The position numbers and the translations under genes are program-made. Under the pieces are notes generated by a model. It ran no database searches and was not told where the DNA came from. It saw only the letters and a list, made by a program, of their open reading frames with translations. From Piromyces finnis finn (Eukaryota > Fungi > Neocallimastigomycota), in assembly GCA_002104945.1 (NCBI GenBank), contig MCFH01000003.1, positions 1,302,001-1,366,000 on the forward strand: 64,000 nucleotides of DNA, in the 5' to 3' direction. Shown one piece after another: positions 6,355-10,754 of the stretch (position 1 is the first letter of the stretch; each line of letters opens with the position of its first letter).

Positions 6355-7020
6355 TTATCTTATTAAAAATGAACTACAACCTTCAGTAATTACCAATAAT
6401 AAGTTATATTTTAATGATGAATATGATTTATAAATAGGTAAATCGATTTGATTAAAACTATATTTATTGAAAAAATATTTATAATTTAAATAAATAATTT
6501 AAATAAATCAATTATAAAATTATATATATATAATAAATCTATTTAATTACCATGTATGAGAAACTGGTAATCCATCTTCTCTATCTATCTTACATATATG
6601 AAAGCCTTTAACCCCACAGCAATTTATCATATCTGAAAATCCTGTAACTGGAATTTGAGAATTACCAGTTACAAAAGTAAGCAATTTAATACGGTTTTTA
6701 TTATTAAATTCACTTACACACTTTAAAAATATATATTTAAATAATTATAAATAAACAGGAAATTTATTATTATTATTATTATTATTATTATTATTATTAT
6801 TATTATTATTATTATTATTATTATTATTATTATTATTATTATTATTATTATTATTATTATTATTATTATTATTATTATTATTATTATTATTATTATTATT
6901 ATTATTATTATTATTATTATTATTATTATTATTATTATTATTATTATTATTATTATTATTATTATTATTATTATTATTATTATTATTATTATGTTTATGT
7001 TTATGTTTATGTTTATGTTT
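6355..7020. repeat. Inverted duplicate of ~8-714 (HECT 3' exons, introns and microsatellite)
   Basis: 6410-6770 is the near-perfect reverse complement of ~300-660, including intron sequence. Confidence 0.95.
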
Positions 7021-10000
7021 TTATTTATTATATAAATGAAGAACATACTTGCCAAAAGTATTTAATTGTAGGACTATTATTATTATATCCTCCTCTATAA
7101 GAAGTATTATTTTTCCAATCATTTATATCTATTTCATTAATACCGTTTATTAAAAACTTTAAAAAAATGAAATTTTAGTAAAATAATTAAAAAATATAAA
7201 AGTCATTTATTATTTTTTATAAATAAATAAAAAAAAAGATATAAACTTTTAAATCATTTTCATTTAATCTATTATTAACAAGTATAGTTTTTGGAACGAT
7301 TTCATATAATCCTTCTTTTATTTTTTTTAATGGTTCTTCACTACTTAAGAATTTTTTTTTGATAAGAAGACTAAATAATAATAACATATTAAAAAGAAAA
7401 ATAATAATAATAATAATGAGGTATATGTAAGATAAATAAACAATTAATTATATTATTATCTTTTATAGTTAAATATATTATTATATATAATTATATACAT
7501 AATGCTTACTCTATATATTCATTTATATTATTATTATTGACTTTTGTACTTTTACCATTTTTCATTAATTCAATGGTTTTATTCTTTCCAGAACTATCTT
7601 TAATATCTATCTCAAAAGTTAAATCTAAAGCATCAATATTTCTGCAAGTTCTAAAATTTAATAATAAGAAATTTAATTTTTTTGAAAAAAAAGAAAAAAA
7701 TAAAAAAATTAAATTTATAAAAATATTTATATATAATTAAAAATATTAATAAATTGATATATATGTATATATGTACTTTAATGATTTTAAACTTTCGTAT
7801 AGTGAAGCATCTATGTGTTTTATATCATCAATTGTTATATTTTTATTAAGTAATTCTTTGTAAAATAATATATTAAATGGTATGGATAAATAATGTCCAT
7901 GATATATAGCTAATCCAATAAGTCTTCCAATAAATTTAAAATGGTTTAAATAATTATTTTGGAATTTCTTTTTTGAATCTGGATTAATTTTTAGCATATA
8001 AGAATCTTCTTGAATTGGAACAAAAAGTCCGAAATCTGGTTTTCTAACAACTTTTGACAATTGATAGAAAAAATCTCTATTATGTTCATGAAAAAAAAAA
8101 GAAAATGGAAAAAGAAAAGGAATACTTAATAATAATGTTTAAATAAATATATATTAAATACTAAATTACAATAAGTATTTACTTTAATAATCCACTATCA
8201 TCTATTCCTATTTCGTTATTATATTCAATTTGGATTTTCTTTTTTAATTCATTAGGAGACAATCTACTTATATTCGAATATGCATCTAAATATATATTAT
8301 TTCTACTAATTTTAATATCTATAGGATCTAAAAGGTCAGTTACTGTTAGTAGTGGTATTAAACGAGATCTAATAGAAGAAACTTTTCTCTTGAAACTTAA
8401 TTTATATTCTGAAGTAATTCCACTAAATTAAAAATGTATACAAGTCAATAAATTATAGATATATATATATATTATAAATATCAATTATATCAATATTTAG
8501 ATATTACTTACCTTTTTTCATTATACATATAATCTAGTACATAAAGTTGATTAAATTAAAGAATAATTAAGAAAATTAGAAATATCCTATATAATAGTAA
8601 TTCTCTATTAAATATATAATTATTTAAAAATTATATTTACCTAAATTATCATCTAAAGTACTAACTATTGCTCTTGGGAATAAACCCTTTTCACTCTTAT
8701 TTTTTTCACGATAACCTTCAACCCATCCTTCTTTATCTTTAATACACCAATTAGTAACAATTAAAAATTCATCTTCTTTAATATCTAAATGATAATATTC
8801 ATTTCCGATAAAATTATTATTTGCAATAACTAATGATGGCTTTCTATTTTTCATTTCTTTAAATAATAATAAAAAATATATATATGATAATCAATTAATC
8901 AATATTTGAAAATATAAAAGTAACAATAATTTATAAATAATTTATAAATAAAAGAATTATAATATAATATTACTTTTTTGTAATTCAACTAATTTTTTTT
9001 TAATTCTTTCTTTTTCCTTTTTTAAATTTTTTAATTCTATTTCAAAAGCATTTTTTTCATCTTTAAATTTGGTAAACTCATTATCAATCTTTTTTTTTTC
9101 TTTTTCTTCCTTATTTGTTGTTGTATTGTATTCTAATAATAAATCATCCTCGTTTCCTTTTCCTTTTATATTCTGTCTGTTTTTATTTCCTTTTTGATAT
9201 TAATATACATATTACATATATATATATAATATTAATTTTATTCAATATTAATAAATATTTTATGAAATAAATTTATTTATTAATTAGAATTACCATCTTT
9301 ATCATCATAAACTCTAATATAAATTCCAACAACAGCTCGGTAATTATTATTTAAAGTATTTCTTGATGGCAGCTGATCAATATTGCAAATCTGAACTTCA
9401 TGTAGTTTAGTTGATTTAATATTTTTAAAAATTACAGCTTTCATAATAATAAAAATATAAAGGTTAATTATAAATTATTCAAAAGTATATTTTAAGTGCA
9501 TTATTTTGTATTTAAAGAAAATATATATTTTACATTTTATAGACGTTAAATAATCATAATTTTTACAATTACGAATAATATATACATAATCAATATTGCA
9601 TGGATAAAGGTTTTTTTTCGAATTACAGTGTATTAAAGATAAATAAATTTTTTCGTTTTTTATAGCTAATTTTATATACCTTTTTATGTTTATAAATTTG
9701 TTTTATAAATGTAAATAAAAAATGTTTTATTAATAAAATTCTAAATTTATTTAATAATTTTTTATATTTACCAATTATGATTATTTATATTGAAATAGGG
9801 ACTAAAAGATATATTTTTCTTTTTTGGAATTTCAATAGGAAATTCATAATATTCTTCTTCTGCCAAAAGTTTAATATTTGTTGATATTAATGATTTTAAA
9901 GATTTTAAATAATTATCTAAAAATAAAATTAAATAAAATTAAATATTATTATTATTACCATTTATTTTTTTATTTATTTATTTATTTATTAATACCTATA

Positions 10001-10754
10001 TTGTTATCGAAACAATATTCTTGGATATAGATACCAAATATTAATTTATTATTTTTGATTAATGGTTTTATATCCCTATTAAATACTTCTTTTGTTAAAA
10101 GATATTCATAACCATTACATATTTTTGATACACTGGCTTTGTTAAAGCAATAAAGAGATGATACTATTTATCAAATTATATAAAATAATTAGTAAAAGCT
10201 AATTACTTTTTAACACAAAAACTTAATAATAATTATATTATTTACCCATTATAATTTTAAATTCATTATTATTACACGCAATACCAAATTTAATATATAT
10301 TGTTTTAGGCATATTACTTTGAAGACATATTTTATAATCGTTGCAATTCTTCTTAATAGTAATTTTCCTTTTTCATAATTGTATATTTTTATTAGTGTTT
10401 AATAATTATTAAAATATTAATATAATATTATACCATTTATGATTACAAAGTTCAAATTCTTTATTGTTATAGCACGTTTTAGATATATTGTTTTTAATTT
10501 TTATATTCTCTTCAATAACTATATTTATATAATCCTCTTCAACAATCTGTAAATTATTGTTTTCATTTGAATTAATACTATCAATTAAAAATTTTAACTG
10601 ACTTTTACAGTCCACTATATTTATATATTTATATTATTATAATATAATTGAAAATAATAAAAAATTAGTATATATATAAGTATTAATGGTTAATAATAAA
10701 ATACATATTATTATAAGATTTCTATTTATAAAGTATACTTTCGTTCGTTGTCAT
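6355..10754 (-). CDS. MATH-MATH-coiled coil-SH3-HECT E3 ubiquitin ligase (~853 aa, 17 exons)
   Basis: Exons 10739-10754, 10434-10614, 10246-10367, 9996-10163, 9772-9916, 9534-9679, 9294-9437, 8974-9189, 8641-8856, 8512-8533, 8183-8422, 7777-8076, 7510-7650, 7247-7370, 7049-7156, 6551-6720 and 6355-6457 are phase-consistent (2562 nt). HECT: ISRNNIYLDAY..EIGIDDSGLLKDFF..HFKFIGRLIGLAIYH..DWKNNTSYRGGY..FWQ..SHTCFN. SH3: YHLDIKEDEFLIV..EGWVEG..GLFPRAIV. Two MATH-like units (SPYFNINNHNW..VVGIYIRVY; FELCNHKW..LIKNNKLIFGIYIQEY), less certain than SH3/HECT. Confidence 0.88.
6766..7000. repeat. (TTA)n microsatellite in an intron of the MATH-SH3-HECT gene
   Basis: Directly visible; it produces the spurious poly-I ORF 6723-7055. 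Confidence 0.97.

Follow-up and report, generated by a model that had tools for sequence, protein, structure and literature searches.

The HECT ubiquitin ligases of fungi have been reported to fall into six conservative subfamilies in which few domains are newly invented (PMC5913265, PMC3673628). A survey of eukaryotic HECT proteins from 2013 found fungi to be HECT-poor with little domain diversification, and MATH is unmentioned there (PMC3673628). The fungal survey of 2018 lists four HECT genes for Piromyces finnis, one of which is RSP5, and notes the seven 'RSP5' genes of Pecoramyces only as a numerical amplification; SH3, MATH and ankyrin are all unmentioned (PMC5913265). Here we analyzed 64,000 nucleotides (nt) of DNA from the gut fungus P. 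finnis (Neocallimastigomycota), positions 1,302,001 to 1,366,000 of the forward strand of contig MCFH01000003.1 (assembly GCA_002104945.1), to which we refer as the window. Its minus strand carries a gene, called the ligase gene below, that we read as encoding a HECT ligase of about 853 residues, in which MATH-like units, a lysine- and glutamate-rich (K/E) helix and an SH3 domain take the place of C2 and WW domains. We put the probability of this reading at roughly three in four.

Two groups of described proteins are useful for comparison. The Rsp5/Pub1/NEDD4 ligases belong to the same HECT class, and their catalytic cysteine, the phenylalanine at position -4 and the GG-L-DFF motifs of the N-lobe are kept in the P. 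finnis protein. They carry C2 and WW domains, however, where the P. finnis ligase has two MATH-like units, the K/E helix and SH3, and in a phylogenetic tree the two sets fall into separate clades divided by a long stem. The genome of P. finnis also holds an ordinary C2-WW-HECT Rsp5 on another contig: P0187, a protein named as the C2-WW-HECT ligase of P. finnis, matches that contig with 94-97% identity in five exon matches, and with 71-84% identity where a match runs into an intron. The second group consists of SPOP, a MATH-BTB adaptor of CUL3, and the TRAFs, with the order RING-coiled coil-MATH. MATH is the presumed substrate-binding module in these proteins and likewise in the ligase, and the TRAFs also pair MATH with a coiled coil, for which the ligase has a candidate, although the domain order is reversed in the ligase. 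Whereas SPOP and the TRAFs depend on a cullin partner or on RING catalysis, the ligase has a HECT domain on the same chain.

Gene structure and HECT domain

The minus strand was read from position 10850 to 6250, and exon borders were set by reading frame and GT..AG splice signals. The resulting gene starts with an ATG at 10754-10752 and ends with a TAA at 6357-6355. A frame check by coordinates gave 2562 nt, corresponding to 853 codons and the stop, with no internal stop codon; at the composition of the gene, the chance expectation for 853 stop-free codons is about 7e-42. All 16 introns are GT..AG introns of 66-328 nt, and apart from intron 15 (328 nt) none is longer than 139 nt. The guanine-cytosine (GC) content is 21.9% in the exons and 8.5% in the introns, compared with 19.7% for the window overall, and each exon has a higher GC content than each intron, the exception being micro-exon 10 (0.14, against 0.15 for the top intron). 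Frame, splice signals and GC contrast thus agree with the 17-exon gene of the original prediction, both ends of which were exact.

Three parts of this model are weak and uncertain: exon 1, micro-exon 10 and the point at which exon 8 begins. No ATG lies in frame within exon 2, and for the exon 8 acceptor there are three candidate sites, 9189, 9162 and 9156, each of which is in frame. Micro-exon 10 is supported by a database protein, P0001, which begins at the methionine inside this exon and continues into exon 11.

The Pfam scan was run exon by exon. The HECT family PF00632 matched exons 12, 13, 15, 16 and 17 at model positions 3-97, 89-144, 183-226, 218-273 and 275-303, respectively, so that the coverage runs from 3 to 303 of 306 model positions, with E values from 6.5e-21 to 2.6e-3. 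The remaining gap is filled by exon 14, as seen in the alignment to family members. The catalytic cysteine (residue 820) lies in the context ...SHT-C-FN..., with its codon split by intron 16, and since the C-terminus reads ...SSFLIR, the phenylalanine at -4 is present as well. The HECT domain is therefore complete, as originally predicted. In sequence searches against the PDB, the best matches of exon 12 were SMURF2, Pub2, NEDD4 and Rsp5 (E 1e-21 to 1e-15), and matches to Tom1, HUWE1, HACE1 and E6AP were weaker (E 1e-10 or weaker). Because exon 12 is closest to SMURF2, Pub2, NEDD4 and Rsp5, the predicted Rsp5-like character holds, and judged by sequence the HECT domain is of the NEDD4/Rsp5 type. 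C2 and WW domains were found in none of the exons (Pfam, E <= 1).

Searching 1.84 billion representative proteins with exon 12 yielded a single match below E 1e-30, which was P0001 and was identical over the exon. All other matches had at most 57% identity over the matched stretch and at most 50% where most of the exon was spanned, so that apart from P0001 no orthologue above 50% identity was found among these representatives. P0001 is the database model of the ligase gene itself. It comprises 356 residues (window positions 6550-8533) and extends from micro-exon 10 to exon 16, using another donor inside exon 14 and thereby skipping 14 residues. The donor of exon 16 is read through in this model, which ends with ...SHTW and consequently lacks the catalytic cysteine and exon 17; exons 1-9 are also missing from it. 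In an alignment of 18 family members, P0001 keeps all of the invariant columns.

Domains upstream of the HECT domain

The SH3 domain, encoded by exon 9, precedes the HECT domain by about 25 residues. It was matched by the Pfam models SH3_9 (E 2.3e-5) and SH3_2 (22.3 bits, cut-off 21.8), and the sole sequence match in the PDB was the SH3 domain of DOCK1 (E 0.0017). It is 41-58% identical to the Pfam-positive SH3 domains of family members, and the SH3 domain named in the original prediction is thereby confirmed. The predicted K/E coiled coil remains a candidate. Exon 8 is indeed rich in both residues, with 19 lysines and 12 glutamates among 71 residues, but its assignment as a coiled coil draws on this composition and on weak matches to coiled-coil families in Pfam. 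In the AlphaFold model of the homologue P0170, a single helix of 77 residues is found at the equivalent position.

Since Pfam is silent on the N-terminal exons, a local MATH hidden Markov model (HMM) was built from 51 units found in the MATH-repeat proteins of anaerobic fungi and scored against every stop-free six-frame fragment of the window, 2451 in total. The three top-ranking fragments were exon 4 (model positions 85-126), exon 6 (40-90) and exon 5 (1-27), in this order, and the frame of exon 2 followed at rank 6 (4-28), where alone it is not significant. We calculate a chance of about 8e-9 that all of the top three fragments would come from the frames of the six N-terminal exons. When the sequences were shuffled 1000 times, the real score was reached by none of the shuffles for exons 4 and 6 and by one for exon 5. 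Within each unit the model positions are collinear with the order of the exons. The alignments include the family motif F-x-I-x-N-H-x-W, of which exon 5 contains ...F.I.NH.W.

The two N-terminal units also resemble each other. Exons 2 and 5 are 34% identical over 50 residues, and the intron phases are alike in both units, with the same tryptophan codon split as TG/G and the middle exon followed by a phase-1 intron. These data support two divergent, mutually related units that are probably derived from MATH, more firmly for unit 2. The assignment draws on a portion of each unit and on the paralogy of the two units rather than on fold prediction. The two MATH-like units originally predicted are thus supported in part, through exons 4, 5 and 6; the Pfam models gave no match, and exons 2, 3 and 7 are not significant on their own.

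The likely source of the N-terminal units are the multi-MATH proteins of anaerobic fungi (P0256-P0268), which contain up to six units and share with the ligase the F-x-I-x-N-H-x-W motif and the C-terminal strand. Unlike the ligase, they have no HECT domain in the precomputed Pfam list. Elsewhere in the P. finnis genome, many MATH-like exon matches were seen within 9 kilobases (kb) at G000:C168:82700-91600, probably representing one or more multi-MATH genes.

The SH3-HECT family and the neighborhood of the gene

Among the matches of exon 12 was P0012, in which a coiled coil is followed by SH3 and HECT. Its SH3-to-HECT part served as the query of a word search that gathered a family of proteins from Orpinomyces, Anaeromyces robustus, Piromyces sp. 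E2 and samples of the Joint Genome Institute (JGI); after these, the search returned ordinary C2-WW-HECT ligases of fungi and animals. Ahead of SH3 and HECT, the family members carry ankyrin repeats, MATH_2 or no feature that Pfam recognizes, and many of them, such as P0012, appear in the databases as helix-SH3-HECT only. The ankyrin form is exemplified by P0162 of A. robustus, which UniRef names HACE1. The ankyrin forms, P0170, P0174 and the ligase have one layout in common: repeats for recognition come first, followed by a long predicted helix, SH3, some 25 linker residues and HECT.

MATH_2, SH3 and HECT occur together in one polypeptide in P0170, where Pfam places them at 55-179, 308-357 and 456-714, and in P0174 (PIROE2DRAFT_14222, Piromyces sp. 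E2); P0177 combines three MATH units with SH3. P0170 has 723 residues and is encoded on a contig of 2394 nt. As a contig of this length leaves no room for introns, its MATH, SH3 and HECT parts probably belong to one transcript. Its AlphaFold model (mean predicted local distance difference test, pLDDT, 73) contains a beta sandwich (54-182), the helix (207-283), SH3 (305-362) and the HECT domain. The structures closest to the model were the HECT domains of Pub2, Rsp5 and NEDD4, among the matches listed; a Foldseek search with the whole model returned HECT structures only among the top 50 listed and says nothing on the MATH part.

To these proteins the ligase is only distantly similar, with identities of 41-58% in SH3 and about 32-47% in HECT. 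Other members are 56-81% identical to P0012 (SH3 and the start of HECT), the ligase being far more divergent, and its MATH units lie below the reach of Pfam, in contrast to the Pfam-positive MATH_2 of P0170 and P0174. P0001 is 42% identical to P0170, the lowest value of the 17 other alignment rows. When P0177 was used as a single-sequence query against the genome, its matches at the ligase locus were confined to SH3 and exon 11.

A quick maximum-likelihood tree was calculated for 60 proteins, with the ligase gene represented by P0001. It separates an SH3-HECT clade (42 rows), which includes P0001, from the C2-WW-HECT clade with a support of 100 in the Shimodaira-Hasegawa-like approximate likelihood ratio test (SH-aLRT). 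Within the former, the three MATH-bearing proteins form a group of eight rows with five others (SH-aLRT 88). The genome assembly that was searched comprises 56.46 Mb (megabases) in 232 contigs; in it we found neither another locus with SH3 next to HECT nor a further copy of exons 6 and 12. Taken together, the ligase gene is a single-copy and very divergent member of a Neocallimastigomycota family in which ankyrin or MATH is followed by helix, SH3 and HECT. The original prediction of a lineage-specific ligase with new modules fits insofar as the family comes from gut fungi and C2 and WW are absent, but the architecture is not peculiar to this gene. The family is present in databases; as far as we searched the literature, we did not find a description of it, nor a paper joining 'anaerobic fungi' with 'MATH domain'.

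Two further HECT matches were noted in the genome. At G000:C164:253186-254235 (minus strand), a HECT domain 44-46% identical to Rsp5-type HECT domains lies in an uninterrupted open frame of 2605 residues, which is unusually long for an intron-rich and AT-rich genome and may be the Tom1 orthologue. A match to the HECT C-lobe in an open frame of 755 residues was seen at G000:C156:1496082-1496702 (minus strand), on the same contig as the ligase gene and about 190 kb from it.

The features of the window are compiled in Table 1. The 3' end of the ligase gene is partly duplicated in inverted orientation, and the duplicate contains exons 16-17, the 3' flank and a portion of intron 15 that includes the microsatellite. 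Compared with 6095-7033 it is 87% identical over 965 nt (blastn), and one arm of 679 nt is 96% complementary; the copies of exons 16 and 17 are 98% and 88% identical in protein. The copied microsatellite occupies window positions 1-305. Copies of other ligase exons were not found in the 12 kb upstream; as only exons 16-17 are duplicated, we rejected the idea that the window holds another full HECT gene. The two helicase genes, which flank the ligase gene about 11 kb apart, are 95% identical over 3.5 kb.

Table 1. Position of the ligase gene, its parts and neighboring features in the window
Feature	Position	Strand	Remarks
Whole ligase gene	10754-6355	minus	17 exons, 853 codons + TAA; sequence reading and coordinate frame check
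Exon 1	10739..10754	-	16 nt: ATG + 4 codons + 1 base; plausible but unproven start
MATH-like unit 1, exons 2-4	9996..10614	-	about residues 30-162
Exons 2, 3, 4	10614-10434, 10367-10246, 10163-9996	-	
MATH-like unit 2, exons 5-7	9294..9916	-	about residues 163-307
Exons 5, 6, 7	9916-9772, 9679-9534, 9437-9294	-	
Exon 8	8974..9189	-	K/E-rich predicted helix, coiled-coil candidate
SH3 domain, exon 9	8641..8856	-	Pfam, PDB match, family identity
Micro-exon 10	8512..8533	-	22 nt, SH3-HECT linker; required to hold frame
HECT domain, exons 11-17	6355..8422	-	Pfam PF00632, PDB sequence matches, tblastn of family members
Exons 11, 12, 13, 14	8422-8183, 8076-7777, 7650-7510, 7370-7247	-	
Exons 15, 16, 17	7156-7049, 6720-6551, 6457-6355	-	
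Catalytic Cys codon (residue 820)	TG 6552-6551, T 6457	-	split TG/T across intron 16
(ATT)n/(AAT)n microsatellite	6750..7020	.	about 270 nt, within intron 15
Inverted partial duplicate of ligase 3' end	30..969	+	copy of 7033-6095
Two superfamily 1B (SF1B) Upf1-like helicase genes	~970-4713, 12134-15702	-	Pfam AAA_11, AAA_12

Alternative readings, proposed mechanism and significance

Several observations weigh against a ligase with MATH-like units, helix, SH3 and HECT on one chain. Exon by exon, neither of the Pfam MATH models (PF00917, PF22486) matched the ligase exons at E <= 1, and a six-frame scan of the genome with PF22486 found five other places and not this locus. With the local MATH HMM, exons 2, 3 and 7 are not significant (1000 shuffles each). 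Exon 1 and micro-exon 10, like the joining of exons 7, 8 and 9, are inferred from frame and splice signals only, and the P0001 model stops before the catalytic cysteine. Furthermore, P0001 has the longest ingroup branch of the tree (1.95, median 0.37), which could reflect relaxed constraint, and its position inside the SH3-HECT clade is not fixed by the quick tree.

The long branch would also be expected of a decaying or recently inactivated copy, that is, an SH3-HECT relic in a rearranging region that yields no working ligase. The low identity to P0170, the lack of a relative above 50% for exon 12 among the representatives searched, and the inverted 3' duplicate, duplicated helicases and long microsatellite of intron 15 nearby point in the same direction. 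However, decay is hard to reconcile with 853 codons free of stops, with 16 introns that are all GT..AG and with the preservation of the family-invariant HECT residues, the catalytic cysteine and the phenylalanine at -4, and we regard it as improbable. We give similarly little credence to two genes at this locus, or to an N-terminus that is not MATH, such that exons 1-7 are separate and the ligase begins at the helix or at SH3. The many helix-SH3-HECT members such as P0012 would suit this arrangement, as would the silence of Pfam on MATH at the locus, the three of six N-terminal exons without signal and the omission of these exons from P0001. Against it, the intervals between exons 7, 8 and 9 (104 and 117 nt) are like the other introns and the phases are compatible, exons 4, 5 and 6 give collinear MATH matches, and P0170, P0174 and P0177 join MATH with SH3, the first two also with HECT. 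A defence-type cluster made up of the ligase and the neighboring duplicated SF1B helicases is very improbable. Families with MATH domains often evolve fast, and the ligase gene is flanked by two nearly identical Upf1-like helicase genes, both of which are compatible with such a cluster; yet the second 'HECT' is only a 3' fragment, and adjacency in one eukaryotic genome is a weak sign of common function.

The ligase is most likely active, recruiting its substrates via the MATH-like and SH3 modules and maybe oligomerizing by the helix. E2~ubiquitin would dock on the N-lobe of the HECT domain, and ubiquitin would be handed to Cys820 as a thioester; from there it would pass to a substrate lysine while the N-terminal modules retain the substrate. 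The targets of the MATH sandwiches would be short peptide motifs, in the manner of SPOP, TRAF and USP7, and those of SH3 would be proline-rich motifs. The helix may form dimers or trimers, as in the TRAFs, raising avidity. Instead of or in addition to binding substrates, the SH3 domain beside HECT could keep the enzyme inhibited, in the way the WW-linker acts in ligases of the NEDD4 family.

As P0001 is truncated and lacks the catalytic cysteine, surveys of annotated proteins will miss or misclassify the ligase. The combination of MATH, SH3 and HECT in a single chain unites two systems of substrate recognition that elsewhere are known separately, and the ligase is a compact model for the acquisition of new targeting domains by a HECT enzyme. 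A broader idea, which we consider speculative and unlikely, is that gut fungi made one Rsp5-type HECT ligase into a modular, fast-diversifying family, in which ankyrin and MATH arrays are swapped in front of a fixed helix-SH3-HECT part. If this were true, the family would depart from the conservatism that has been reported for HECT ligases of fungi and might serve conflict-type or lineage-specific target recognition, and the ligase gene of P. finnis would be its most divergent member, situated in a rearranging region beside duplicated helicases.

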